The notes under the pieces were generated by a model. It was not told the DNA's origin. It did no database searches and worked only from the letters and a program-made list of their open reading frames with translations. Positions 1 to 63,601 of a DNA stretch of 64,000 nt are shown here, piece after piece. Each line of letters opens with the position of its first letter. Position 1 is the stretch's first letter. The translations under genes and the position numbers were made by a program. The stretch lies in the IMG/VR virus record IMGVR_UViG_3300047472_000309, positions 62,001 through 126,000 of that record. One strand, 5' to 3'.

Positions 1-439
1 GGACATGTCCACGGTGCTCGCGATGCCGATCAGTCAGGGCTTCTCCTCCAATGCCATGGCAGCAGGCAGTGAGATTGGCGCCGTCGCAGGTGGGGTGGTG
101 GGTGCAGGCGGGGGTCCGCTGACGGCGATCGGGGGTGCAGCACTCGGCGGGGCAGTCGGCGGCGCACTCGGTGCGGGTGCCGATGCCTTGAACAATGCCG
201 CGCAAACCATCGGCTCGATGTTCGACGATGACAATACCTTCACGGATTACATGGCGGTGTTGTCAGGCATGGGTCTTACGGACCAGATCTACTCGATGAA
301 CAAGTTCAAGCTTAACTTGACTCGCGCCATGACGAGCTGGAAGACCTGGTATAGCACGGCGCATTTTGCCAGCTTTGCCGGAGATACCTTGCCGGGCAGT
401 TTAGTTTCCGCGATCTTTGGTCGCACCGTCCGTAACTAA
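1..439 (+). CDS. C-terminal part of a probable virion structural protein (5' end outside window)
   Basis: Frame is open from the window edge; Gly/Ala-rich stretch followed by FDDDNTFTDYMAVL; ends just before a hairpin element. Confidence 0.6.
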   Translation, partial: DMSTVLAMPISQGFSSNAMAAGSEIGAVAGGVVGAGGGPLTAIGGAALGGAVGGALGAGADALNNAAQTIGSMFDDDNTFTDYMAVLSGMGLTDQIYSMNKFKLNLTRAMTSWKTWYSTAHFASFAGDTLPGSLVSAIFGRTVRN

Positions 440-7370: not shown

Positions 7371-7903
7371 GATGTTTTCCTAATCCGTTCAAGCCAGTCC
7401 TCGTCCGGTTCCACAAGGTTGATCGTCATCGCGAGCTGGTACTTCTTGCCCTGATCGATCATGTGTTTCGTGCCTCGTGATTCACCGTCCCAGAACGTGA
7501 TGAGATGGGTTGCCACGCGTGCCATTTGAGTGTTGCGCACATAACCTGCGCTACGCCCGAGCCCGTCCCAGTCGGCAGGAAACTCTGCCCATGGGAAGCC
7601 GTTCTCTTTGCACCAGTGGATAATCATATCATCAGCGCCCTTGCTGGCCTTGCCGGATACAAAAACGATCCTGGGTAAGTCAACCAAATCCTCTTTCATG
7701 AGCCGCAACTCCAACCAGTGGACAAAGTCCTCGTAACGGTTATAGTTGCGACCCCCGGCGACCACAATGATCGCGTCCCAGATCTCACGCGTTAACAGCT
7801 CATGCGGCACCACAAACTCTCGGCCCTTTACGATGGGCCACTCGTCGAGCAGATTTAAGCGCTCGCGTAGTGCGATTGCGGAATGCTGAATTTCATCATG
7901 CAT
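7313..7903 (-). CDS. SLOG-family (YspA/DUF2493-like) protein
   Basis: VAGGR..VSGKASKGAD..FPADW..GRSAGYVRN.QM..FWDGESRGTKHMI. Confidence 0.85.
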   Translation of the reverse strand: MHDEIQHSAIALRERLNLLDEWPIVKGREFVVPHELLTREIWDAIIVVAGGRNYNRYEDFVHWLELRLMKEDLVDLPRIVFVSGKASKGADDMIIHWCKENGFPWAEFPADWDGLGRSAGYVRNTQMARVATHLITFWDGESRGTKHMIDQGKKYQLAMTINLVEPDEDWLERIRKTSWQETEQLLKRLSTNGSRS

Positions 7904-8674: not shown

Positions 8675-10105
8675 TCATGCTGCGGCCTTCAGGGCATCCA
8701 CGCTGACCGGATACCAGTACGGATGGTACAACCCCTTACGCATCCGCAGCAAATCCATGGTCGAAAGGAAAGGCAACGGATGGTCTTCGTCCGTCGTCCA
8801 CCAGCCGCGCGTATTGAGCAGCAGCTCCCAGTCGTAACCCTTGGCCTTCAGGTCGTTGTACAGCTCTTCCGGCGTGCACATCAGGTCGTCCAGGTGATGC
8901 CACATGTACGACATCTGGCACATTTCCGACGTGATGTTCAGCGCCCGACGCAGCTTCGCATCTTCGTCGATCTTGCTACGCACGGTAGTGCGACCCAGCT
9001 TGCACTCCGGATAGAGCGCCAGTGCGTAGTTGATCTTGCTGCCCACCAGCCCGTAGTAATCCTGTTCACGGATGTGATGGAACTCGGTCAGTGAGGGCAA
9101 CACGCCTTCGGTTTGTGAGACGATCAAGGTGATCGCCATGCCCGAGGGCCCGGACTTGGAGCGCAGATTGCGCAGCTGCACGGTGTTCAAGTCCGTATCG
9201 AGCTTGACCTTGTCATCGGAATCGCGCGGATACTCCGGCCCGTTCTTGTCCGCCGCCATCAAAGGCGAGGCGTTATAAGCGTGCCAGCAGTTGTGCGTGA
9301 TGAAGGTGAACTTGTCGGTCGTGCCCTTGATCTTGTCGCCGTTTTTCAGGTGCTTGAGCTTGACGATCGGCACCGAACCGGCAGGCCCTGCGTTTTGCAT
9401 CGTCGACTCTTTGCCGATGTGTGCGGTCATCAGCGAGTAGTTATTCGCCTGACCGTTCAGACGCGGCGCTTCCATCAGCAAGCGCAGCTTAGCCAGACCC
9501 TGACGCATGTGAATCGTGTTACCGCCCGATTCGCCCAGATCGTTCTTGTCCTGCATGTCCATCACGTCCGAGGTTTCGAATTCCGTGAAGGAGTCGATCT
9601 CATTGAACGTGGGGATGATCATGCGCAGCGGCCCGGAGCGATCCCGATTCCAGAACGGCGTATCCACCGACCACTTGCCGACGTTCTTGGCTTTCTCTTC
9701 CAAGAACTCGCGCTGCTTGGCGTACCAGTCGTCGCCCGTGTGCATGGTCTTGTCGGTGATAATCCAGCGTCCCGTTTGCAGGACGTCTTCTTCGTGCAGA
9801 CCTTCGACTCGACGGATCATCTCCATCAAGTGCCATTCCTGAATGTTGACTTCGGTATCGTAGGTGGAGGCCGAAGCCTGACGAAAACGCGACATCGCGG
9901 TGAGCATCTGGTAGTGCATCACCGTGGACTTGAAGTTGTTACCAATCCCCACGACCCCGGTGAGCGTAGCCAGGCCGCCGTTAAGGATGTGCTCACCCTT
10001 GCGCCCCTCGATATAGGTGCCGGTGGGGATGTCCATCAGTGCACCGATGTTAATCATCAGTTTCACGTTGGGCGCAGCGTTGATTTTAGGTTGAAGAAAT
10101 TCCAT
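8675..10105 (-). CDS. uvsX: UvsX/RecA-like recombinase (phiKZ gp152-like)
   Basis: Walker A variant GIGNNFKST, YDTE, IDSFT; true start MEFLQP at 10105 (the longer track ORF runs antisense into the next gene). Confidence 0.85.
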   Translation of the reverse strand: MEFLQPKINAAPNVKLMINIGALMDIPTGTYIEGRKGEHILNGGLATLTGVVGIGNNFKSTVMHYQMLTAMSRFRQASASTYDTEVNIQEWHLMEMIRRVEGLHEEDVLQTGRWIITDKTMHTGDDWYAKQREFLEEKAKNVGKWSVDTPFWNRDRSGPLRMIIPTFNEIDSFTEFETSDVMDMQDKNDLGESGGNTIHMRQGLAKLRLLMEAPRLNGQANNYSLMTAHIGKESTMQNAGPAGSVPIVKLKHLKNGDKIKGTTDKFTFITHNCWHAYNASPLMAADKNGPEYPRDSDDKVKLDTDLNTVQLRNLRSKSGPSGMAITLIVSQTEGVLPSLTEFHHIREQDYYGLVGSKINYALALYPECKLGRTTVRSKIDEDAKLRRALNITSEMCQMSYMWHHLDDLMCTPEELYNDLKAKGYDWELLLNTRGWWTTDEDHPLPFLSTMDLLRMRKGLYHPYWYPVSVDALKAAA

Positions 10106-10246
10106 GTGCTTTGCTTTGGTCTTAAATGGAGAATGACGAAACACAGCCGTACAAATAATGGCGATAGTCGGTGAAAAATACCATCCCGCTATAGCTGCCA
10201 CGCGCATGTTATGGCTTACAAACTTACCCCAGTCAGAAGGACACCT

Positions 10247-11074
10247 ATGGACTCGCTTCAAACTCTGCGTCACCATCGTGACGTTGTGGCGCTGGAGACT
10301 TTCAGCGTCCAGGCACTCGATGTCACCGGCATGCTCAAACAGATCTTCCCGGACATCAAGAAACACTTCCTCGATTTCACACAGCGCTTCTCGGGCACCG
10401 ACAAGCCGGTGCCGCTCTCGCGCCATCAGGCGAGCTTCATGAAGCTGCTGGAGCGTCACAACTACGTCGACATCAGCCCGCTTACCGTTTACTGCCCCGA
10501 AGGCATGAAGGGTACTTACCTGGAACTCGCCGCGGTGCTTAAGCGCGGTGCCGAGCATTCGGCCAAGGTGATGGATCTGCTTAACCAGTACACCACGTAC
10601 TTGGCGCTGCTGATCACCAACGAGTATCAACGCTTCTCGACGGAAAATTCGGCCAAGGTCTACCAGGGTCTGCAAGAAGCCCGCACGAGCCTCTTGAAGG
10701 ACATCGGCGCCTGCTTCAATCCGGGTCGTCACGACACGACCATGAAGTACGGCGAGGCCGTCGCGCGCAACAAGGACTGGGAGCTCGTGTTCGGTGAAGT
10801 CGACACGCTCTCCAAGCTGAGCAACAGCGTCTCGCGCGAGAAGCTCAATGCGAAGGTGAAGGAAGCCACCCAGTACATGGAAAAGATCGTCCAGATGCTC
10901 AAGGACGGCAAGATGGAAAGCACTGCGTACGAAGTCGCGCAAGAGCTCTCCGAGGGCGCCTACCAGATCGCCTGCGAGCTCGAGTTCTTCTCGACGATGT
11001 ACTTTCGCGTGATGGCGTTTAACACGAGCATCAACGAATCGGTCGACAAGATTACCGATAACCTGAAGTCGTAA
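10247..11074 (+). CDS. Probable head/virion protein with N-terminal ALE cleavage motif
   Basis: AGAAGG RBS before ATG 10247; VALETF motif; codon bias typical of highly expressed genes. Confidence 0.65.
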   Translation: MDSLQTLRHHRDVVALETFSVQALDVTGMLKQIFPDIKKHFLDFTQRFSGTDKPVPLSRHQASFMKLLERHNYVDISPLTVYCPEGMKGTYLELAAVLKRGAEHSAKVMDLLNQYTTYLALLITNEYQRFSTENSAKVYQGLQEARTSLLKDIGACFNPGRHDTTMKYGEAVARNKDWELVFGEVDTLSKLSNSVSREKLNAKVKEATQYMEKIVQMLKDGKMESTAYEVAQELSEGAYQIACELEFFSTMYFRVMAFNTSINESVDKITDNLKS

Positions 11075-11089
11075 GCCCTTTCGCCAGAC

Positions 11090-11146
11090 CGGCATAAACC
11101 CACTAACCCGCCCGTACCACTGGGGAGGTTAGTGGGAATATGACCG
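11090..11146. terminator. Bidirectional CGGCATA-hairpin-TATGACC element
   Basis: cggcataaa cccactaacc...ggttagtggg aa tatgaccg, between convergent genes. Confidence 0.7.
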
Positions 11147-50425: not shown

Positions 50426-52630
50426 TCACGACACCGTGTGCATGTTGACCGCAACCTTCGCCGTCACCACGTCTTCGATGCCGCTCACGTCGATCGAACC
50501 CATGATCGGCAGGTTCACGACGTGCAGGAACGACGGCTGGACCGTGATTTCCTTGCTGTTCGCGCCGTTGCGGTGCAGCGGGAGAATCAGCGTCAGTTCC
50601 GGCTTCCATGCCATGTTGCCGAAGTGCATCGGGTTCGGCACGCCTTCCTTGCCTTCACCGAATTCGCCGAACGACATGCGGATCTTGCCGCGCATGTTGA
50701 TGTTCAGCGTCGACACGATCTTCACGTTGAAGTCGTTGCCGAGCGTACGGAAGTCGCCCGTGACTTGCAGGTAACGCGCGATGACCGGGTCCGTACCGAT
50801 GATGACGGTCGGCGTAGCAGCGATGCCGCCAGCCAGTGCGTCTGCAGCAGCCTTGTAGCCCGAGTCGCGGTACATGCGGTAAGCCATGTCGCGCAGGATG
50901 TTGATCAGCGAGGCCTGGATGTCGGCCGCACGCTCGTGCGACTTGATCGAGTCCACCACCGCCGGTGCGTTGTAGTCTTGGTGCTCGTAGAACGGAGTCA
51001 CCAGGAAACGCGCCACGCCGAGGATTTCCGGATCGCCTTGATACAGACCACCGTTGGCCGTGACCAGTTCCTTCAGCGCCGTTTCGACGTCCAGCAGCTT
51101 CGCCACTGCAGCGTTCGACGTACGGATGTGCGTTGCCGTGATCAGTGCAGCCAGATCGCTTGCGTCGTTCTGGTCACCCAGCGTCAGCGGACGCGGAATC
51201 GTGATCGGCGACAGCAGCGGCACGCCGTAAACCATGTTGTAGAACGTGAGGTCGAGCAGCTGACCGCGTTCACGACGGTTCGTGTTGGTGCGACGTGCGT
51301 CGAGGTCGTAACCGACGATCGATGCGCCAGCCAGCGCCGTAGCGATGGTTGCGCCTGCGCCCGTGGTCGGGTCGACGATGTTGCCGTCTTCGTCACGGAT
51401 TTCGTAGATCGACACTTGACCAGCCGACAGTTGCGTGTCAGCGAGTTCGAGGTTCACGTTGCCGAACACTTGCACCGACAGCTTGACTTCGTAGTTGCCT
51501 TGCACGATCGGCGCGAGCACCGTCGAAGCCGAGCCGTCGGCCTTCTTCGTGTTCACGTTCAGCACGAGCGCGTTGCTGATGAAGTTCAGCGTCATCAGAC
51601 GGTAGTTGTTCTGCACCGAGTACGTGAACGTGCCCGATTGCATGTTGGCAACCGACTTGAACTTGATGACTTCGGCCGAGCCGCCCGAGCCGACTTGCAG
51701 GTACAGCGAGCTCAGCTTGATCGCCGGGTCGATTGCGTCGGTCGAATCCAGCATGCCGGTTTCGAGCAGCGCGTCGGTTTGCGAGATGCCGAGCAGCGAG
51801 AACGACTTGCCGATCGCGAGCGGCGCCGTCTTGATCGACACGCCTTCGTGTTCGATGTCCGCAGCCGGAACCAGGCCGGTCGCGACGAAATTCGCTGCGC
51901 TTTCCGGACGGTAGACCGGGACGATCTTCGAGAGGTCGTTGCGCAGGATGGTCGGGTCGATCAGGGCCTGGATGATGTTCTTCTTGCCGAAGTTCTTGCT
52001 CAACGCGCCGTCGATGGTGCGACGAACTTCGTCGTACACTTGCACGAGGCGAATCGACACGGTGTAGCCGTACTGGTCCGGCGTGACGACGACGGTCGGG
52101 AAGAATGCTTCGCCGAATTCGTCTTGACGTGCTGCTTGCAGGTTGTACGCCACCGAGTACACGGTAGCCGACTTCGTTTCACGCTCGTCGTAGGCTTCGA
52201 GCGCCTTCGACTGACGGTGATCCATCGCGCCGTTGCCCATCGCGGGGATGAACGTGTGGCCTTCGAGCGAAACCTTGCGTGCGACCGGTGCCTTCAGGAA
52301 GCCAGCCATGTCGCCCGCGACGATTGCCGCGACCAGACCTGCTTGCTTTTGCGCGACGGTGTGCTTGCCCTTGATCAGGCCGTCGTTCGCGTTCAGTTCA
52401 GCCGCGAATTGCGAGCTGATCGATTCGAGCGACGTCTTCAGACCCTTCACCGAGCCTTCGAGTTCGAGCTGCGTGGTTGCGTCGAGCGATTCCATCGCGA
52501 CGACGGACGATGCCAGGCGCTTTTCGATGTGCGGGCCGCTGCGGTTGACAGCATGTTGGACCTTCGCAACCAGCGAGTTGATCGTGCCGTCCTGGCCAGC
52601 GTTGCCGATTTGATACAGTTTGGAAGACAT
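50426..52630 (-). CDS. Major capsid protein (phiKZ gp120-like)
   Basis: 734 aa; propeptide with AME/SLE/SLE/ALE sites; YN..AARQDEFGEAFFPTVV; extreme codon bias. Confidence 0.9.
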   Translation of the reverse strand: MSSKLYQIGNAGQDGTINSLVAKVQHAVNRSGPHIEKRLASSVVAMESLDATTQLELEGSVKGLKTSLESISSQFAAELNANDGLIKGKHTVAQKQAGLVAAIVAGDMAGFLKAPVARKVSLEGHTFIPAMGNGAMDHRQSKALEAYDERETKSATVYSVAYNLQAARQDEFGEAFFPTVVVTPDQYGYTVSIRLVQVYDEVRRTIDGALSKNFGKKNIIQALIDPTILRNDLSKIVPVYRPESAANFVATGLVPAADIEHEGVSIKTAPLAIGKSFSLLGISQTDALLETGMLDSTDAIDPAIKLSSLYLQVGSGGSAEVIKFKSVANMQSGTFTYSVQNNYRLMTLNFISNALVLNVNTKKADGSASTVLAPIVQGNYEVKLSVQVFGNVNLELADTQLSAGQVSIYEIRDEDGNIVDPTTGAGATIATALAGASIVGYDLDARRTNTNRRERGQLLDLTFYNMVYGVPLLSPITIPRPLTLGDQNDASDLAALITATHIRTSNAAVAKLLDVETALKELVTANGGLYQGDPEILGVARFLVTPFYEHQDYNAPAVVDSIKSHERAADIQASLINILRDMAYRMYRDSGYKAAADALAGGIAATPTVIIGTDPVIARYLQVTGDFRTLGNDFNVKIVSTLNINMRGKIRMSFGEFGEGKEGVPNPMHFGNMAWKPELTLILPLHRNGANSKEITVQPSFLHVVNLPIMGSIDVSGIEDVVTAKVAVNMHTVS

Positions 52631-55049: not shown

Positions 55050-55106
55050 GCTAGGTGTGACACTTGGGCCTGACCAGCCCAGGTGTTGCCCTAGCCTTTT
55101 ATGCCG
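55050..55106 (+). terminator. Hairpin + TTTTATGCCG element
   Basis: gctagg..acacttgggc..gcccaggtgt..cctagc ctt ttatgccg. Confidence 0.7.
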
Positions 55107-55192
55107 CTCCAATGCCAGTAAAAGAATCGAGCCGAAATAGTTATGAATCCATTTTTGGTCCGCTAACTATACACCGACTCTCAGGGGTGCGA

Positions 55193-57286
55193 ATGTTCTC
55201 CGGTTTTAAACGCCTAATCGGCTCCATCGACGTCTTCGAGGATGAAAAACTCATCCATATCGAAGGCTTGCCTGCCGATGTGATTGCCCGCGACATCACG
55301 AAAATCTGGTCTACCAGCAAGATCGCGATGTTCATGTTCACCAAGATGGGACGCTCAAGCGTTGCGTTCAACAAGTTCTTTGCCCCTGACATCGTCTACA
55401 CCTTTGAGACGATCATCAAGCTGCGTAGCCGCAACTATAATAACCGCGCGCTGCAAAAGATCGTCGACCTGATGTACGAGAACACCTGGCTCAAGAGCGT
55501 GCGGGAAGCCTCGCACCCAGCCATTCTGGATTTCAGCCAGCTCGATGAACTGAATGTGAACCTGCTGCCCCATCAGGCAGAGTTCCTCCAGCTCTATAAC
55601 GAGATGGTGCCGCGCATGAAGTTGAAAGGCTATGTGCTGGCCGCCGCCCCTGGCTCGGGTAAGACCATTAACTCGATTGCGCTCGGCTGTGTACTGAATG
55701 CCGATGTGTTTATCGAGCTGGTACCGAAGCCCGCGGTGGATGAGGTGTGGGATAAGACGCTGCGCACCCTCTTTAAGAAGCCGGAGAATCACAAGTACTG
55801 GACCACGCTCTCCGGTAAGCCGCTTGAGTGGGGTTATCGCCACTACGTGTTCCACTACGAGCAGCTCCCAAAGGCGATCGAGTTCTTCAAGCAACACCAG
55901 CACAAGCTCCGTAAGCCGTTCATGATCGTGGACGAGTCCCACAACCTGAATGAGCTCGATAGCCTGCGCACGAACCTGTGGATCGATCTGTGCAAGGTAA
56001 CTGACTGCCAGCACGTGCTGCCGATGTCCGGTACGCCGATGAAAGCCATCGGGGCGGAAGCGATTCCGATTCTCACGGTGCTGTGCACGGACTTTAATCA
56101 GGACGCCCAGTTGCGCTTTAAGGAGATCTTCGGTAAGAACTCCGTGCGCGCGAACGACATTCTGCGTAACCGCCTTGGACAGATGATGTACAAGGTCGAC
56201 AATGTGGTGGATAACAACCGCAAGGAGATCCAGAAGAACATTGAGATGCCCAATGGTGGTGTCTATACGCTTGACGCGGTGAAGGACGTCATGAAGGCGT
56301 TCATTACCGAGCGCATGGCCTACTACCAGGCGAACTTCAAGGGCTTCCAGAACATCTACTACACGGCCTGTGGGATCTACGAACGCACCCTGCGTGATGG
56401 TCCTGCCAAGAACGAGTACAAGAAGTACCAGGGCTACATCAGCCAGATCATCCAAGGGTACGACCCGAAGACGATGAAGGACATGGTGATGTTCTGTAAC
56501 AAGTTCGAGAAGCAGAAGATCGCCCCGTGCTTGCCACGCGACCTGAAGATCTCGTTCCTGGATGCCCGCTCGGTGGTGAAGTACATGGACTTGAAAGTCC
56601 AGGGTGAAGCCTTGGGTCGGATTTTGGGTAAGCTACGTGCGCAGTGTCACGTCGACATGCTGTCCTACGTGGGGATGCCGGAGCTCATTGATGGCTCGAT
56701 GTCCAAGACGCTGATTTTCACGTCCTACGTGAATGTGGTCAAAGCCGCGGATGAGTATCTGCAGAAGGAAGGCTATCAGCCCTTGCTCGTCTACGGCGAA
56801 ACCAACAAGGACCTGAAGGGCATCATCAAGCGCTTTGATGAGGACGAGGATCTGAACCCACTGATTGCAACCTTCGATTCCTTGTCGACTGCCGTGCCGG
56901 TGCTTTCCGCGTCGACCATGATCAACCTGAACGCGCCGTTTCGGGACTACGAGTACAAGCAGGCGATTGCACGGATCGATCGGATTGGTCAGAAGTTCCC
57001 CTGCACGATCTGGAATGTGTTTCTGGATACCAAGGGTGTGCCCAACATCTCGACACGCTCGAACGACATCCTGAACTGGTCACGGGAAATGGTCGATTCG
57101 ATCATGGGCACGAGTAGCGCTGGGTTGGATCTGGCGCTGGAAGCCTTCAGCTTGCAACAGAAGGCCGATCGGTACGAGCTGGCGATGGAAACGTTTAACG
57201 ACGGGGGTACCGAAGGCGACGACGAGAAGGTCGAGACTGGTAGTATCATCGTTCAACCCAACTGGATGTCCTGGTCATCTAACTAA
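55193..57286 (+). CDS. SF2 (SNF2-like) helicase, probably virion-packaged
   Basis: APGSGKT, IVDESHN, MSGTP, QAIARIDRIGQ; C-terminal ALE/AME sites; start MFSGF at 55193. Confidence 0.88.
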   Translation: MFSGFKRLIGSIDVFEDEKLIHIEGLPADVIARDITKIWSTSKIAMFMFTKMGRSSVAFNKFFAPDIVYTFETIIKLRSRNYNNRALQKIVDLMYENTWLKSVREASHPAILDFSQLDELNVNLLPHQAEFLQLYNEMVPRMKLKGYVLAAAPGSGKTINSIALGCVLNADVFIELVPKPAVDEVWDKTLRTLFKKPENHKYWTTLSGKPLEWGYRHYVFHYEQLPKAIEFFKQHQHKLRKPFMIVDESHNLNELDSLRTNLWIDLCKVTDCQHVLPMSGTPMKAIGAEAIPILTVLCTDFNQDAQLRFKEIFGKNSVRANDILRNRLGQMMYKVDNVVDNNRKEIQKNIEMPNGGVYTLDAVKDVMKAFITERMAYYQANFKGFQNIYYTACGIYERTLRDGPAKNEYKKYQGYISQIIQGYDPKTMKDMVMFCNKFEKQKIAPCLPRDLKISFLDARSVVKYMDLKVQGEALGRILGKLRAQCHVDMLSYVGMPELIDGSMSKTLIFTSYVNVVKAADEYLQKEGYQPLLVYGETNKDLKGIIKRFDEDEDLNPLIATFDSLSTAVPVLSASTMINLNAPFRDYEYKQAIARIDRIGQKFPCTIWNVFLDTKGVPNISTRSNDILNWSREMVDSIMGTSSAGLDLALEAFSLQQKADRYELAMETFNDGGTEGDDEKVETGSIIVQPNWMSWSSN

Positions 57287-57297
57287 GAGAGCAAAAC

Positions 57298-59427
57298 ATG
57301 AAACGACGCATGAGCCTGGAGAGCATTGCTGCTCTGGGTATGGAATCCTTCGACTCGTCCCCCACAGGCAATGTTCAGCCGACGATGCAGGGCGAAACCC
57401 CGGAGCAGCCCCTCATCACCGCAGGCTACAACGAATCACCCTTCAGTGGTTCGGAGAACTATGCAGCGGAGAAGCTGGCCCAGCGAGTCAAGGAAGCCAT
57501 CGAGAAGCCGCTCTTTCCGGTGCGCTACGCTTCGGAAGCTGACGCCATCGTGGTGGACGACGATGAATTCGACGCGCTGATTCGTTCCTCGACAGCTGCC
57601 ACGTCGGTCTGGGACGACGACAGCCAGGTCTCGCTTGAAGCCAAGGACAGCAACAAGCTGGCGGTCGCCAAGAACAAGCTGCACGGGCGCTTTAAGAAGA
57701 TGTTTGAGGGCTGGAAAGATGGCTGGCGCACCATGCCCGGTCTCATCAAGAAGTACGAGGCACGGCTCGCCGAGCTGCAGAAGGAACTCAACGGCACGAT
57801 CATCCGCGGCCCGCTCGATGTGAATCTCTCGGGCCTGTGGCAGCACTTCTCCAACGACGCCGGTCCGATCCACAACAACTTCATGCACAAGGTGCAGGAG
57901 GACTTGGCGTTCTCGAGCTATATCCTCGGCGACTTCTCCAAGGAAGCGATGGCTCAGCTGCGTAAGCTGGAGATGGCCCTGCACACGGGTCAAGGCAACT
58001 CCGACGAAGAAGCCAAGCGCACAGCACTGGATCTCGAGAAGCTCGAAGCCCCCTCGATGTACCTGGACCACAAGTGGATGTGTGTCTCGGGTGAGCAACC
58101 GTATCTGTCGGTCACGGGTATCTACGCCAACCAAGGGCGTGTGCCGCGTCCCGTGGCGATTGGTGGCATGTCGATGGAGAAGCTCGCCAAGATGGCGATG
58201 CCGTTCCATGTACGCGAGTACGGCTCATTCCTGCACGGCATGAAGAAGCTCTTCGTGAACGGTAGCAAGGCGAACGTGCGTTTGACTGAGAACGATCTGG
58301 AGAACCTGCTCAAGGCCGGTCAGACGTACCTGGAAGGTGCGCGCAGCTACATGGATAACTACCATAACAGCTGGCCGATCTTCCGGCGTATTGACGAGTC
58401 GCTTGAGCTGATCTGGAAGGACTTCGATCTGACGGACTACTCGATCACGCTGGGCGATGAAGAGGACGAAGACGCCGTGGAAATCAGCTGGCAGACGTCG
58501 GGTACCGGTGACGTGACACGCCGCGCTGCCCTCTACGACCAGATCCTGATGGTGGTGCAGAACTTCGCCGACTCAGTGGTCGCACCGGGTAGCCACGAAG
58601 CGCATCGCGCGGTGCGGGCAGCGAAGTTCCACTGCTACTTGCTCGAGGCTGCGCTGAAGGCCGCGAAGTCAGCGGCGATGGAAAGCGAGAGTCTTGCGAT
58701 GGAAGCACGCGGCTTTAAGGGTCTGCAATTGGCTCAGGAGTTCTTCTGGAACAATAAGCCTCACAAGCCTGAGGAATACGTGGCGCCTAAGTGGAAGGAC
58801 ATCCCGAAGCCGCAATGGGACCCGAAGCACCCGCCCTCAATCGCTGAATCGGTGAAGGCCCTGCGTGCTGCTATGCAAGAGCACGATCCCGAAGCTCTCA
58901 AGACGTTTAATCGTCCGGCGACTCCTCAGGAGCTGCAAAAGCTCGAAGCCCTGGTCAAGCAACACACCGGCAAAGGTTTGCCCCCGCAATTGGTCGAGCT
59001 GTACAAGATCTCCAATGGCGGTGTGGATAGCTACCGCCACCTGCGTCTGTTTGACTTCGATGATTTCATGCCGATTCAGCAGGTCATCCAAACCTACGAG
59101 TTGTTCTTGCACTTGACCGAGAATGACTGGGCGGGTGACGAGTCGGAGATTGAAACCGGTATGCAAGGCAAGCGGTATTGGGAACCATGGTGGATTCCCT
59201 TCACCGCCAGCGGTAGTGGCGACCATTTCTGCGCGGATGTGAATCCGGGTGGCGGTGGGCAAACTGGTCAGGTGATCGACTGGTGTCATGATTACCACGC
59301 TCGTCGGGTGGCTGCCCCGAGTATTGCAGCATTCTTGGCGATGTCGATTCATCGTCAGTTATACCTGATCCAACACAAGAAGGATTGGGACGCCAAGAAC
59401 GGTGGCGGGCAAGCAGCACAGAAGTAA
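57298..59427 (+). CDS. Internal head protein fused to a C-terminal SMI1/KNR4 (SUKH) domain
   Basis: SLE, GME, SLE, AME, AME sites; C-terminal PAT.QEL.KLE...LP..L.ELY..SNG...WIPF..SGSGD.FC.D..PG..GQ.GQVI.W.HD......APS...FL. Confidence 0.8.
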   Translation: MKRRMSLESIAALGMESFDSSPTGNVQPTMQGETPEQPLITAGYNESPFSGSENYAAEKLAQRVKEAIEKPLFPVRYASEADAIVVDDDEFDALIRSSTAATSVWDDDSQVSLEAKDSNKLAVAKNKLHGRFKKMFEGWKDGWRTMPGLIKKYEARLAELQKELNGTIIRGPLDVNLSGLWQHFSNDAGPIHNNFMHKVQEDLAFSSYILGDFSKEAMAQLRKLEMALHTGQGNSDEEAKRTALDLEKLEAPSMYLDHKWMCVSGEQPYLSVTGIYANQGRVPRPVAIGGMSMEKLAKMAMPFHVREYGSFLHGMKKLFVNGSKANVRLTENDLENLLKAGQTYLEGARSYMDNYHNSWPIFRRIDESLELIWKDFDLTDYSITLGDEEDEDAVEISWQTSGTGDVTRRAALYDQILMVVQNFADSVVAPGSHEAHRAVRAAKFHCYLLEAALKAAKSAAMESESLAMEARGFKGLQLAQEFFWNNKPHKPEEYVAPKWKDIPKPQWDPKHPPSIAESVKALRAAMQEHDPEALKTFNRPATPQELQKLEALVKQHTGKGLPPQLVELYKISNGGVDSYRHLRLFDFDDFMPIQQVIQTYELFLHLTENDWAGDESEIETGMQGKRYWEPWWIPFTASGSGDHFCADVNPGGGGQTGQVIDWCHDYHARRVAAPSIAAFLAMSIHRQLYLIQHKKDWDAKNGGGQAAQK

Positions 59428-59441
59428 GCAGTAAGCGTAGC

Positions 59442-59480
59442 GAGGGAGCGGCTCGAGAGGGCCTGCTCCCTCTTATGCCG
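59442..59480 (+). terminator. Hairpin + TTATGCCG element
   Basis: gagggagcggc..gcctgctccctc t tatgccg. Confidence 0.75.
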
Positions 59481-59542
59481 TAGTTTTATCGCCCCGTGCT
59501 GAATCTTATAGAACTTCTCTCAAACCCTTTATTGGTCCCACT

Positions 59543-60283
59543 ATGAGCCAAACCGACGAGCTGGCACAATGGCTCGAGACTGTGCCCGAAAAAGTTCGTA
59601 AGAACGTGTCGATTGTGACCCCGGTTGAAGTGAAGCAAGACTTCTTCCTGCACATTTCCACGGCCACGAACATCAAGAAGTTTATCCCGTTAATTGGGCG
59701 CCGTCAGGCTTATAGCGAGGATCGTACCGTCCCACGCGTAACGGTGGCTCCTACGCTGCTGGGGTGCTTGATCGGCTACGCGAAGGCCGACCATGACTTT
59801 CGCGAGTACCATTCCACGGGTAAACCCGAACACGGTAACTACAAAGGCGGCTGGAAGATTTACGCGCTCCCTTTCGAAGCAGCCTTAAAACCGAATGCGC
59901 GCATGGTGTACGATGCGCAAGCAAGCGACGAGCACTGGCTGGTGTCGTACTCACGGGAAACCAACGAGTACATCCCGCAAGCGGCGGGTAAGATGTTCTA
60001 CCGGTCACTGCGCCTGATCGGTCGCTCAGGAAAGAAGCCTGCCGGGGAGATGGAGTTGTATGTGGAAGTTACAAAAGAAGACGGGCTTCGTTTTAGTAAG
60101 TCCCACTTCCTCAATCCCGGCTACTACCGCGTGGTTGGACCCGTGCAAGAAAACGTCGCCAGCTGGAAAGACGATAGCGAGTATGTGGTCACCCCCATCG
60201 ACAAGGATGACTACCTCTCCGCCAAGAACGCAGCCGCCGACCTCTTGGGATTCAAAGATCCCCCACCCCATCAGCAGTGGTAA
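59543..60283 (+). CDS. Hypothetical phage protein (possible ART-like fold)
   Basis: LHIS...F.P...EDRTVPRVTVAPTL.GCL...EHW; the fold assignment is a guess. Confidence 0.55.
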   Translation: MSQTDELAQWLETVPEKVRKNVSIVTPVEVKQDFFLHISTATNIKKFIPLIGRRQAYSEDRTVPRVTVAPTLLGCLIGYAKADHDFREYHSTGKPEHGNYKGGWKIYALPFEAALKPNARMVYDAQASDEHWLVSYSRETNEYIPQAAGKMFYRSLRLIGRSGKKPAGEMELYVEVTKEDGLRFSKSHFLNPGYYRVVGPVQENVASWKDDSEYVVTPIDKDDYLSAKNAAADLLGFKDPPPHQQW

Positions 60284-60286
60284 GAA

Positions 60287-61009
60287 ATGAAAAAACCGAC
60301 CTACCTGGAATGGGCGAATTCGCAGATTCGCCCGGTGGCACTCGAAGCACTGGTGCTCGAAGAGCTCGCCCTGGAAAAGGAAGCCACTTTCGACGAAGTG
60401 TATAAGAAAAGTGGCTGGATGAAGAAGATCGGCATGAAGCTGGTCAGTCTGTTTGGCTATGTCCCTGACCTTGCCTTCCAAAAGGAAGACGTGGACATGC
60501 ATGTAGTCCAGCAGATACTCCAGCACAAGGAGCTGCTCCAAGCGGTCTCGGACTGGATCTCGGACACCAACTACGAGTTGCTGCCCAAGCTTCATGAAGC
60601 CAAGAAGGTGTTCGAAGCCATCCAGCGACCCAAGCCCCATCCGATTCTGTACCGGGGCTTCAAGATCAATCCGGGCCAACAGAATTCGGGGATCGCTGAG
60701 CGCTACAAGCAGATGAAGCCGGGTGACAAGTGGCAGCATACTCCGGATAAGCCCATGTCTTTCTCCTGGCATCAGGGGACCACGCGCGCATACGGCGACA
60801 TTATTGTCAGTGCGAACTATAACGCGCTGGCTAAGCGCTGTCTGCACATCACCAACGAGATGGTGGCGGCGCTCTTTCATCTGGACCTGGACGGCAACAT
60901 CGATCCTAACTACGAGATGAAAGCCGAGGCGTACATCTTCACGTACGCTGAGAGCGTGTTCCTGCCTGACGGCAAGCCGATCGAATTCACCCTCGTCTCC
61001 AAGGGTTAA
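60287..61009 (+). CDS. Putative R-S-E ADP-ribosyltransferase with a head-protease-type propeptide
   Basis: ALE...ALE N-terminus; LYRG, MSFS and a late Glu (YAESV) in canonical order. Confidence 0.55.
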   Translation: MKKPTYLEWANSQIRPVALEALVLEELALEKEATFDEVYKKSGWMKKIGMKLVSLFGYVPDLAFQKEDVDMHVVQQILQHKELLQAVSDWISDTNYELLPKLHEAKKVFEAIQRPKPHPILYRGFKINPGQQNSGIAERYKQMKPGDKWQHTPDKPMSFSWHQGTTRAYGDIIVSANYNALAKRCLHITNEMVAALFHLDLDGNIDPNYEMKAEAYIFTYAESVFLPDGKPIEFTLVSKG

Positions 61010-61030
61010 TCCTTTTCACATTGGACCAAC

Positions 61031-62266
61031 ATGAAATCCTTTAACATGCGCGCCGCGCTCGAAGCGCGCCCGATTGAAGACCAAGATCTGGAAGACACCG
61101 CCAAGCCTGCGCCGGACGCAGGTCAGATCGATGGCGACACCACGACGCTCTCCGGCATGGCCAAGCCCGGTCAGAATCCGGTGCCCGATACGGAAAACGT
61201 CGCTACTGAAGGCACTGAGAAGATCGATACGCGTCCGGTGGATCTGGACGATGTCGTCTTGCTCGAGCAAGATCGCCGCGCCTTTGAGCCGCAGTCGGAA
61301 GGCAGTGCTGAGCACGATGCGATCAACGCGCAGAACATCGCCCAGGAAGGCTGGATCAGCAAGAAGTTCGAGAATGTCAAGGACTTCTTCATGCATCGTG
61401 AGAAGGAACTCGAAGATGGCCACACAGCCACCAAAGAGAACCTGGAAGCGATTGCGCGCCTGCGCACCAAGTTGCAAGTACGCGCGGGTGAAGTCACCCG
61501 CGATGCGGACACCGTCACGATCAGCAAGTACGCCAAGTGGCTCTCGATCGACGGCAAACACATCACCGATCCCGCGCGACTGATTCGTGAACTGCAACGC
61601 GTCTACGAGCTCGTGCAATGGTCGGGCAATCTGGATAAAGCCTGGCTCGAGGGCTACAAGTTCGTGGCGGACCAGATCTGGAAGCTCGGCGAGACGGACC
61701 TGAAGAAGGCCAACGAGAATCTGAAGAAGATGTGGGAAGTCACGCGGCCGCAAGGCGCCGAGAAGTGGCTCACGGTTAACAAGCCGGTCCAGTTCAAGGG
61801 CAAGGAATACATCGACAAGCATTCGCCGTTCTTCCTCGGTCAGTGGTGCGTCTTTGAGATCTCCCAAGAAGAAGACAACCATGCACCGGGCGGGATTGTT
61901 GAAATCCAGCGCATGAAGTCGATGAAGGCTGTCGGCGGGGGTGAATTCCCGGCGTTGACCAAGGCCCAGATGAAGCAAGTGCTCGACATCTGTGAAAAGA
62001 TCGAAGCGCATCTGGTGTCCATGACCTTCGATGGCCGCATCATCGATCGTTATCTGGACGCGCTGGATGAATTCGCGTATCGCTATCGCAACTTCAAGTC
62101 GCTGTCGCGCGAAGACCAGACACTCGCTTCGCGTCTGTATGCCTGGGGCCAGCTCATCATGCAGCACGACACGACTTTCCTGCCGACGGCTTTTAGCAAC
62201 CACCTGGTGAAGGTGATGTTGAGCTACGTCGAGAAGTCGATGCGTCGCATTGAAGTCGATCAGTAA
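61031..62266 (+). CDS. Internal head protein
   Basis: Acidic propeptide with ALE, ATE and AQE-G sites, followed by the amphipathic helix GWISKKFENVKDFF. Confidence 0.7.
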   Translation: MKSFNMRAALEARPIEDQDLEDTAKPAPDAGQIDGDTTTLSGMAKPGQNPVPDTENVATEGTEKIDTRPVDLDDVVLLEQDRRAFEPQSEGSAEHDAINAQNIAQEGWISKKFENVKDFFMHREKELEDGHTATKENLEAIARLRTKLQVRAGEVTRDADTVTISKYAKWLSIDGKHITDPARLIRELQRVYELVQWSGNLDKAWLEGYKFVADQIWKLGETDLKKANENLKKMWEVTRPQGAEKWLTVNKPVQFKGKEYIDKHSPFFLGQWCVFEISQEEDNHAPGGIVEIQRMKSMKAVGGGEFPALTKAQMKQVLDICEKIEAHLVSMTFDGRIIDRYLDALDEFAYRYRNFKSLSREDQTLASRLYAWGQLIMQHDTTFLPTAFSNHLVKVMLSYVEKSMRRIEVDQ

Positions 62267-62278
62267 AAGGAGTCCCTC

Positions 62279-63601
62279 GTGGAAGAAGTCAATCAAGAAG
62301 CGACGATCGTCACCCTGAGTGATGACGTCGAATGCAATCGCCTGAACGATGCGCTCGATAAGCTGGGCGAGTTGGGTACGCGACTGCAAGCAGACGGTCA
62401 ACTGACAGTCGACGTGGCGCTCGAACATCAGGCCCTCACCGGTAGCAATACCCTGGTGAATACCTACTACAGCACGCTCGGCAAGCAACAGAAGCTCAAA
62501 GTGGCTCAGGAAGGCCTCTACGAGCAAGCCAAGAGCCTGCTGAAGAAGGCGATGGACCTGCTGTGGGAAATGATCGTCAAGGTCTGGAAGTGGCTGCAAA
62601 AGCTCTTTGTGAATGGCGTGCCCATGACCGAAGCAGCCCTCGCCCGCGAGAACGAGAAGTTTAAGTCCTTCGTGATGCCGGTGCAAAAAGCCGAACGGGT
62701 TCCGAGTTCACGCACTGCCATCATCCAGGCTGTCCGGGAAGAAGGCCTGAACGAAGCGTTCGTGAGCAAGCTCACTCCGGAAGAGATGGACATCTACAAC
62801 GAGGGTCCGTACCATCAGGCAGTGCAGCGCATGATTCCGGCGCTGGATGGCTTCAATGTGGCGAGTGTCGTCGAGACGCTGGTGAAGTGGCACGAGAAAT
62901 GGTTGCCTGCCGGTCGCCAGTTTGATCAGGACAACGCAGGGGCTGATCCCCATGCGCTTCAGGACAAGCTGGAACGCTTCCAGAAGGACGCTCAGACCGA
63001 TCTGGAGCACGCGACCTCCATGGCTACCAAGCTCATGCAGATCCGCCTGGAGAGCTACCAGACGGCTGTGGAAGCCCGTCGAAAACTGAAGGTCGATCCG
63101 AACTTCCATCTCGGTACCGATCTCTCGGGCATCATGGCGCGTGGTGTGCGCATCTACGACCAGTCGGGCTACAAGAAGATGGGTTCGGCCCTGACCGATG
63201 TCTTCAAGTCCCTCGACTCAACGGTCAAGAAGATGGAGTCGATTCGCACCAAGGCCTACCAGAATCCGATGCCCAACGACCATGGCGGGGCCAAAGCGGG
63301 CGAGGAGTGGATCGAGCAGATCTACATGAAGGAAGTCAATCGGATCATTTCGACGCTGCATCAGTGCGTCTCGATGATTCAGTTGATCAACAACTACTAC
63401 TCGTTCGTGGTTGGCTCGGGCAAAACCATCATGAAGTACGTGATGACGGTGGCGCAGAAGGCCATTCAGCACGGTGGTGATGCTGCCTCGCTGCAAGAAA
63501 TCGTGCGTAGCGGTAGTTCGGCACTGATGGGCATGGCTGCAGATGGTTCGCAAATGGCAGCGCAGCAACAAGCTGCCGGTATGCAAACCGACATGGGTTA
63601 A
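62279..63601 (+). CDS. Internal head protein
   Basis: GTG start with AGGAG RBS; ALE and AQE-G sites, followed by an amphipathic helix (KKAMDLLWEMIVKVWKWLQKLF). Confidence 0.7.
   Translation: MEEVNQEATIVTLSDDVECNRLNDALDKLGELGTRLQADGQLTVDVALEHQALTGSNTLVNTYYSTLGKQQKLKVAQEGLYEQAKSLLKKAMDLLWEMIVKVWKWLQKLFVNGVPMTEAALARENEKFKSFVMPVQKAERVPSSRTAIIQAVREEGLNEAFVSKLTPEEMDIYNEGPYHQAVQRMIPALDGFNVASVVETLVKWHEKWLPAGRQFDQDNAGADPHALQDKLERFQKDAQTDLEHATSMATKLMQIRLESYQTAVEARRKLKVDPNFHLGTDLSGIMARGVRIYDQSGYKKMGSALTDVFKSLDSTVKKMESIRTKAYQNPMPNDHGGAKAGEEWIEQIYMKEVNRIISTLHQCVSMIQLINNYYSFVVGSGKTIMKYVMTVAQKAIQHGGDAASLQEIVRSGSSALMGMAADGSQMAAQQQAAGMQTDMG

Follow-up and report, generated by a model that had tools for sequence, protein, structure and literature searches.

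Does a 240-residue protein from a phage family labelled 'unknown function' act as an ADP-ribosyltransferase (ART) that travels in the phage head and modifies the host after injection? The question is raised by the gene at 60287-61009 on the plus strand of a 64,000-nt stretch of viral DNA (the window; positions 62,001 to 126,000 of IMG/VR record IMGVR_UViG_3300047472_000309), for which an original prediction made from the sequence alone had proposed a small, virion-packaged ART with the R-S-E order of catalytic residues known from cholera-toxin-like enzymes, and had taken T4 Alt as its model. In both the list of open reading frames (ORFs) and the sequence, the gene runs from ATG to TAA and is complete and intact. 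Here we report that its family, PHROG 29772, is homologous to the T4 enzymes ModA and ModB with the catalytic residues kept, that an orthologue is present in the virions of Ralstonia phage RP31, and that the gene has accessory status. The whole chain, in which an R-S-E mono-ART of an unannotated phiKZ-like family is packaged, delivered in the manner of Alt and modifies a host component, is the account we favour on balance, and the original interpretation is supported overall.

A word-based search recovered 28 close relatives, which formed the alignment of the window subfamily (A1), and an exhaustive profile search recovered 139 relatives, 122 of which, reaching down to 17% identity, formed the family alignment (A2) from which the search hidden Markov model was built. 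The three motifs described in the original prediction are all present, LYRG as L121-Y122-R123-G124, MSFS as M157-S158-F159-S160, and the glutamate as E222 within Y220-A221-E222 (60944-60952). In the family alignment, R123 was kept in 122 of 122 sequences, G124 in 121, S158 in 118, F159 in 105 and E222 in 120, with S or T at position 160 in 119; G170 (121/122) and E191 (112/122) were similarly constant, and W90, in the helical N-terminal region, was nearly invariant family-wide. Because R, S and E are kept almost throughout the 122 relatives, which reach down to 17% identity, the conservation of the motifs is well beyond chance, which confirms the observation from which the original prediction started. 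Among cultured phages, the homologues that have an annotated feature all go by the name 'hypothetical protein' (RP12, RP31, Xanthomonas phage RTH11, Erwinia phage pEa_SNUABM_54, Vibrio phage BONAISHI and Klebsiella phage Eowyn), and in Shewanella phage SXP01 and KpYy_2_45 nothing is annotated where the homologue lies.

The residue two positions before the glutamate, noted in the original prediction as a Tyr that might signal an atypical chemistry, is indeed Y220, and its aromatic character turned out to mark the subfamily rather than the family. Of the 122 sequences, 77 had Q at position 220, 18 had Y, 8 had E and 3 had F, so that most of the wider family carries the classical Q-x-E, whereas in the 27 occupied rows of the 28-sequence subfamily alignment the residue was Y in 22, F in 3 and E in 2, with S223 kept in all 27. 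The window protein itself lacks the Q or E two residues before the catalytic glutamate by which the R-S-E clade is recognised. The window subfamily is also longer than the family (median 231 versus 187 amino acids), owing to an N-terminal extension.

Direct scans of the window protein gave no match in Pfam, NCBIfam or PADLOC, and among the PHROGs it matched its own family but not PHROG 832. Searches of PDB sequences with the protein and with both profiles returned nothing significant; the best match, 2kxi_A (E 0.021), with the R and S motifs aligned, was deposited as an 'uncharacterized protein' and is presumably a Neisseria ART. No named protein was returned by a word-based protein search with the family profile. 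We therefore scanned each of the 122 members singly against four libraries, Pfam, PHROG, NCBIfam and PADLOC. Pfam DRAT was matched below threshold by 42 of the 122 (best E 1.7e-4), over a span from the R motif to past the S motif, and no other Pfam family occurred in more than two members. PHROG 832, labelled 'RNA polymerase ADP-ribosylase', was matched by 28 of the 122 at E <0.1 (best 3.3e-5), and PHROGs other than 832 and the family's own by one member each. NCBIfam and PADLOC, serving as negative controls, yielded no recurrent family, and across the four libraries unrelated families recurred in at most two members.

PHROG 832 is the family of T4 ModA and ModB, while T4 Alt belongs to PHROG 802. 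Using modA, modB and alt from the public T4 record and a ModA/ModB alignment of 8 sequences, we aligned the 122-member profile to ModA/ModB with hhalign at a probability of 95.2% (E 2.7e-8, 109 columns), with R123-G124 placed on R73-G74, S158 on S99, which is invariant in the ModA/ModB alignment, and Y220-x-E222 on E171-x-E173 of ModB. The reversed ModA/ModB alignment gave 0.5% and 20 column shuffles gave at most 2.2%. ModB alone was matched at 86% (E 5e-6), ModA alone at 4.5%, which is too weak, and the window subfamily alone reached 71% over the R and S motifs only; therefore, the wider family is the bridge to ModA/ModB. R73 is needed for the activity of ModB, which R73A inactivates, and ModB has been described as an R-S-EXE enzyme (PMC10468400). 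Kinship with T4 Alt was rejected, as the family profile matched it at 0.2%. Taking these alignments together, PHROG 29772 is best placed as a sister family of ModA/ModB, and neither as part of PHROG 832 nor as a sister of Alt. The R-S-E assignment thus gains support from a profile-to-profile match with three catalytic motifs in register and clean controls, and we regard ART homology, taken by itself, as very probable on sequence grounds. Alt holds as a model for the mode of delivery and not as a relative, the nearest known relatives being ModA and ModB.

AlphaFold modelled the full protein, with the subfamily alignment as input, at a predicted local distance difference test (pLDDT) score of 83.7 and a predicted template modelling (pTM) score of 0.76, and the core alone (residues 96-240, 129 sequences) at 94.8 and 0.86, respectively. 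Residues 1-30 of the full model were disordered and residues 35-112 helical, followed by a strand-rich core that carried R123 in strand 120-125, S158 in 157-160 and E222 in 222-225. The glutamate had been expected in a terminal β-strand; the models instead put E222 in the penultimate strand, the last one being 232-239. Structure prediction followed by a Foldseek search, a check proposed with the original prediction, gave lists dominated by ARTs in which no single match was significant. The top 10 PDB matches of the full model were all ART toxins, among them ExoS, VahC, Certhrax, Plx2a, C3, VsdC, iota Ia and CDTa. For the core model, ART-superfamily chains made up about 28 of the 50 best matches as counted from their descriptions, including ExoS, Certhrax, the RhsP2 toxin, KptA/Tpt1, tankyrase, PARP-2, SpvB, pertussis S1, C3, HopU1, C3larvin, an ART toxin/immunity pair, Vip2 and VsdC. 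Among the viral models of BFVD, the family's own members came first, followed by weak ART, ModB and VIP2-like matches.

Head-packaged ARTs are an established strategy that is predicted to be widespread, and such enzymes are often packaged and common in jumbo phages (PMC9503650; PMC7824862). For the present family, the evidence comes from RP31, searched by local tblastn against six consecutive unaltered stretches of the public record joined as a database. Its orthologue, ORF124, has 211 amino acids and is 45% identical to the window protein in the database search, or 43% over 234 columns in a local alignment. ORF124 is among the 32 proteins identified by liquid chromatography coupled to tandem mass spectrometry (LC-MS/MS) in purified, gel-separated virions, with a theoretical mass of 24.5 kDa, an observed mass of 25 kDa, 2 unique peptides and 8.5% coverage (Table S3, PMC5468394). 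Virion proteomics, likewise proposed as a check, has thus in published form detected the orthologue; virion presence holds for RP31, the phage whose virions the data cover. The BONAISHI paper contains no virion proteomics.

The N-terminus of the window subfamily bears a second possible mark of packaging. The stretch that the original prediction had singled out there is present as V17 to E30 (60335-60376), with A-L-E triplets at residues 18-20 and 28-30. In the 28-sequence alignment, the N-terminus varied in length from 11 to 43 residues and ended in a conserved [A/S/G]-x-E site, with one of G, S and A at position 28 in 26 of 27 rows and E at positions 30 (27 of 27) and 32 (26 of 27). The site falls exactly at the border between disorder and fold in the model, and RP31 ORF124 has the same type of site about 16 residues in. 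A specificity of S/A/G-X-E is also that of the phiKZ protease. The prohead protease of SPN3US cuts after A-X-E, favours V in the P4 position and frees small head proteins of short propeptides 20 and 24 residues long (PMC10052503), and both V17-A18-L19-E20 and A28-L29-E30 of the window protein fit its A-X-E rule. The second triplet (28-30) is a conserved candidate prohead-protease site.

The gene neighbourhood supplies further evidence. In the window and in two metagenomic relatives, whose ARTs are 69% and 64% identical to that of the window, the gene order is DnaB-like protein, SNF2 helicase, SUKH protein, 246-residue protein, ART and two head-protein-like genes, with one extra gene between the SUKH protein and the 246-residue gene in the two relatives. 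The helicase is 44% identical to its RP31 orthologue ORF166, which is in the virion proteome with 14 peptides (PMC5468394), and Erwinia phage RAY also has a virion-associated SF2 helicase, gp131. Burkholderia phage FLC9 showed the same order without the ART, with a clean gap between gp98 and gp99 and a 4-nt spacer (FLC9 locus 7744-7749 versus window 60283-61031), and tblastn found no ART copy elsewhere in FLC9. Because the FLC9 operon is collinear but lacks the ART gene, the operon is conserved and the gene is an accessory cargo in it, which is what one would expect if it encoded an effector directed at the host and not a scaffold. The window locus and that of FLC9 form a natural presence/absence pair. 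The ART gene has the guanine-cytosine (GC) content of its neighbours, and recent foreign acquisition was rejected in view of the lack of a GC anomaly. With published mass spectrometry of a 45%-identical orthologue, a candidate protease site and an operon shared with the helicase, the packaging proposed in the original prediction is supported, and we consider it likely, though less so than the ART homology, for the window's phage.

In the account that we favour on balance, the protein would be made along with the head and ejection proteins encoded nearby, as the operon suggests, and would be taken up into the prohead, in keeping with the virion mass spectrometry of the RP31 orthologue. There, the prohead protease may trim the disordered N-terminus of about 30 residues at the [A/S/G]-x-E site ending in E30, to which the motif, its position and the disorder all point. 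By analogy with T4 Alt and phiKZ-type ejection proteins, the enzyme would then exit the capsid together with the DNA. Judging from homology, it would bind nicotinamide adenine dinucleotide (NAD+) through R123 and S158 within the first minutes of infection, and E222 would drive ADP-ribose transfer onto a macromolecule of the host. The aim seems likelier to be the shut-down of some host function, be it transcription, translation or a defence protein, than redirection of the host RNA polymerase, because these phages bring a virion RNA polymerase of their own and RP12 and RP31 replicate in the presence of rifampicin.

In the window protein, the putative acceptor-selecting position 220 holds an aromatic residue. 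We speculate that the [Y/F]-x-E-S subfamily has an acceptor chemistry unlike that of classical Arg- or Asn-directed enzymes, for example directed at nucleic acid or another side chain, and serves as an injected first-minute effector against defence or translation that acts with the virion helicase and the SUKH protein, a more specific proposal that we put forward as a doubtful one.

Several observations weigh against the account of a packaged, host-directed ART. As for the enzyme, no curated family reaches threshold in the Pfam and NCBIfam scans, and Foldseek against the PDB returned no match at E ≤0.001, the best having E values of 0.11 and 0.28 and TM-scores of 0.2-0.36. The fold evidence is consistent with an ART but not decisive, and the missing Q or E at position 220 could weaken or change catalysis. 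As for packaging, the detection of ORF124 comprises 2 peptides at 8.5% coverage, its gel mass neither shows nor excludes the loss of a short propeptide (16 residues), and the conserved N-terminal motif could instead serve to cap the first helix structurally. For the downstream genes, the name 'internal head protein' comes from sub-threshold matches only. In RP12 and RP31, RTH11 and BONAISHI, the gene sits among small or nucleotide-metabolism genes and not head genes, two metagenomic contigs also carry it away from head genes, and ModA and ModB are early cytoplasmic enzymes with no reported packaging (PMC10468400). These circumstances would suit an active ModA/ModB-like ART that acts in the cytoplasm after its synthesis during infection, the RP31 virion signal being carry-over: the only characterised relatives detectable by sequence are early gene products, homologues in RP12, RTH11, BONAISHI and two metagenomic contigs lie among non-structural genes, and the RP31 identification comes from 2 peptides. 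However, the RP31 virions were purified and gel-separated, with the protein in a band of its own size, and the gene of the window's clade forms part of a conserved string with the orthologue of a virion helicase and encodes an extra disordered N-terminus that ends in a conserved protease-type site, and we judge a purely cytoplasmic role unlikely.

Packaging may also be right and the host-protein target wrong, if an enzyme of the ART fold acts on nucleic acid, on a small molecule, on NAD+ by hydrolysis, or on phage proteins in the capsid or early compartment. The window's clade has Y or F at the acceptor-selecting position, at which other members of the family show Q, R, L, T or E, one relative carries a NADAR fusion, and the RhsP2 toxin and KptA/Tpt1, which act on RNA, are among the nearest chains by structure. 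Members of the ART superfamily with non-protein acceptors are, moreover, well known (PMC9503650). By contrast, ModA and ModB, the only relatives detectable by sequence, modify proteins, and the fold matches to RNA-directed enzymes were no better than those to protein-directed toxins, and a substrate other than a host protein is quite improbable in our estimate. Still further from the favoured account, a catalytically dead ART fold might be kept as a structural or scaffolding component of the head, as the lack of Q or E two residues before the glutamate and the head-associated operon might suggest. Purely structural descendants of enzymes usually lose their catalytic residues, but here R persists in 122, S in 118 and E in 120 of the 122 sequences, even at 17% identity, as well as in the fusion proteins examined, and the gene is dispensable for the architecture of the operon, being absent in FLC9, which fits an accessory effector better than a scaffold; we give a dead fold very little credence.

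The fusion proteins extend the case for a packaged ART. Sixteen relatives are multidomain proteins on large phage-like contigs, the larger ones ranging from 700 to 2350 amino acids (Table 1); nearly all retain R, S and the catalytic E, with Q, R, L, T, E or Y two residues before the E. Such 'polyvalent protein' architectures are interpreted by Iyer, Aravind and colleagues as virion-embedded, injected effectors (PMC9503650). The NADAR fusion ties the domain to NAD+/ADP-ribose chemistry, and the SNF2 and SUKH fusions mirror the operon of the window. DUF5662 recurs at the N-terminus of the ART-containing giants P0095, P0120, P0124, P0130 and P0157, and a DUF5662 protein is encoded just upstream of P0159.

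Table 1. Features of the ART-like gene and its product, of neighbouring genes in the window, and of multidomain relatives
Feature	Position	Strand	Basis or remark
Full ART-like gene, stop codon included	60287..61009	+	PHROG 29772, E 5e-50; 139 relatives by profile search
Residues 1-30, predicted disordered N-terminal propeptide with two A-L-E triplets	60287..60376	+	pLDDT <50
Residues 31-112, helical region before the catalytic core; helices 35-41, 44-56, 71-78, 81-93, 96-112	60377..60622	+	AlphaFold secondary structure
Residues 113-240, putative ART catalytic core	60623..61006	+	Core model, hhalign to ModA/ModB, fold-search lists
Core strands 120-125, 148-151, 157-160, 172-177, 185-187, 217-219, 222-225, 232-239			AlphaFold
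R motif L121-Y122-R123-G124, first core strand	60647..60658	+	R123, candidate NAD+-binding arginine
S motif M157-S158-F159-S160, strand then helix (163-169)	60755..60766	+	
E motif Y220-A221-E222-S223	60944..60955	+	E222, candidate catalytic glutamate
SNF2/SF2 helicase, head of the same plus-strand gene string	55064..57286	+	Pfam ResIII, Helicase_C, SNF2
709-residue protein with C-terminal SUKH (SMI1/KNR4) domain	57298..59427	+	Pfam SMI1_KNR4, E 2.4e-18
246-residue protein, upstream neighbour, widely conserved chimallivirus gene, no function label	59543..60283	+	PHROG 5043
Downstream gene, 411 residues	61031..62266	+	Sub-threshold likeness to phiKZ-type internal head proteins
Downstream gene, 440 residues	62279..63601	+	Sub-threshold likeness to phiKZ-type internal head proteins
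P0159, 2354 residues: NADAR, ART-like domain, SNF2 helicase	L023 8001-15065		265-kb contig
P0124, 1370 residues: DUF5662, GNAT, ART-like domain, SNF2 helicase			
P0120, 1634 residues: DUF5662, GNAT, HD, ART-like domain			
P0130, 2161 residues: DUF5662, GNAT, transglutaminase-like, ART-like domain			
P0068, 806 residues: ART-like domain, SUKH			Close to ClpP-type and S80-type protease genes
P0033, 481 residues: ParB-like nuclease, ART-like domain			

From 1 to 55 kb, the window follows the gene order of the phiKZ-related jumbo phage RP31 at 52.8-106.6 kb, and this collinear stretch holds the major capsid protein (50426-52630, minus strand) and the beta subunit of a phage RNA polymerase. Among cultured phages, FLC9 is the closest relative, with a DnaB-like protein 98% identical over the stretch compared; the phage collection contained no near-identical record of the window, and contigs with an identical ART protein reach 310 kb. 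By tblastn, the ART family occurred among Ralstonia phages only in RP12 and RP31, with the presence of RSL2 and RSF1 in the searched collection not confirmed. RP12 and RP31 replicate despite rifampicin, unlike their relatives RSL2 and RSF1 (PMC5468394), a coincidence with the ART family that is perhaps due to chance. An ORF on the minus strand at 8675-11095 (806 amino acids) matches the RP31 UvsX-like protein over residues 334-795 only, and its extra first ~330 residues may come from a domain fusion, from an insertion or from a start called too early.

Within the plus-strand string, the listed TTG start of the helicase is probably too far upstream, the RP31 similarity starting at residue 40. 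The SUKH protein, two genes upstream of the ART, is conserved in the two metagenomic loci L016 and L017 and in FLC9, and has S-L-E and G-M-E triplets among residues 1-16. Immunity to polymorphic toxins is the role for which SUKH domains are best known. A search for a hidden second ART domain in this protein found none, and a relationship to the ART-SUKH fusion P0068 was rejected. The 246-residue gene, whose stop lies 4 nt before the ART start, was present by tblastn in 79 phage records, including Erwinia phage RAY (gp169) and FLC9 (gp98), and was rejected as an ART-specific partner, FLC9 being without the ART. Between the SUKH and 246-residue genes lies the only sizeable intergenic gap of the string (59428-59542), in which a GC-rich hairpin, its arms at about 59444-59452 and 59461-59470, precedes DNA richer in AT; the gap may be a terminator/promoter boundary before the 246-residue and ART genes. 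In a phage that has polymerases of its own, simple scans for sigma-70 promoters and terminators are uninformative.

Both genes downstream of the ART are conserved in L016, L017 and FLC9. They matched Pfam phiKZ_IP below the cut-off (E 3.7e-4) and the PHROG 'internal head protein' at E 0.002 and 0.028, the product of 62279-63601 scoring 20.3 bits against PF12699 (cut-off 27 bits), and BLASTP did not support their being paralogous internal head proteins. For the 62279-63601 gene, tblastn found a homologue among cultured phages only in FLC9; the 61031-62266 gene, compared only with the fetched loci, has an FLC9 homologue too. Two antisense ORFs, at 60026-60880 (minus strand, 284 amino acids) and 61016-62686 (minus strand, 556 amino acids), overlap the plus-strand genes, the former with a tblastn match to RP31 on the strand opposite ORF124, and these long antisense ORFs look like non-coding shadows in a GC-rich genome.

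Phage ARTs are known, and head-packaged ones since T4 Alt (see also PMC9503650), so that the present case is an extension of that idea and not a surprise. New, as far as can be told, are the ModA/ModB link, the virion evidence, the presence/absence polymorphism and the subfamily change at the acceptor-selecting position of PHROG 29772, a family that is hypothetical or unannotated in the databases and GenBank records examined and has no curated model. A function is thereby proposed for a family hitherto called hypothetical and tied to an existing virion proteome, which bears on what nucleus-forming phiKZ-like phages inject besides DNA and the virion RNA polymerase, and on how such phages restrain the host before their protective compartments form. 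The gene is also shown to be an accessory cargo, which some head-protein operons carry and others, collinear in all else, lack. For annotation, PHROG 29772 may be described as a ModA/B-like ART with near-invariant R, S and E, in which the residue two before the Glu marks subfamilies.

Compared with known systems, the window protein stands closest to T4 ModA/ModB (PHROG 832; precomputed label PF26816), which have about 200 amino acids against the 210 that would remain of the window protein after the predicted cleavage. The two differ in E-x-E versus Y-x-E and in the disordered N-terminus and helical region that the window protein adds, and ModA and ModB are early products not reported to be packaged; no curated model joins both families, and their match is visible only from profile to profile. 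T4 Alt, whose N-terminus is trimmed by the prohead protease, has 682 amino acids, belongs to a different PHROG (802) and has no detectable sequence relationship to the window protein. What the two would share is delivery, since Alt is a capsid component that comes in together with the DNA (T4 record note), as the RP31 proteome suggests for PHROG 29772. By contrast, Alt redirects the host RNA polymerase, whereas phiKZ-like phages bring their own polymerase. DraT (PF07357), from a different biological setting, is approached by relatives at no more than 18.5 bits (ten members inspected; gathering cut-off 25 bits), and the window protein has no match to it.

The C3/ExoS/Vip2/iota-type toxins are the best structural neighbours, with helices that precede the core in toxins and window protein alike, at E 0.1-0.6 and 12-16% identity, and one family member weakly matches Pfam ADPrib_exo_Tox (E 0.16). 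In polyvalent proteins of the kind described in PMC9503650, the same domain is fused with GNAT, HD, NADAR, SNF2 helicase, DUF5662, SUKH or ParB-like domains, whereas the window protein stands alone. The ART protein gave no match to PF12699, the family of phiKZ-type internal head and ejection proteins, and has no sequence similarity to it; what it shares with these proteins is the gene neighbourhood and the predicted [A/S/G]-x-E site near the N-terminus.

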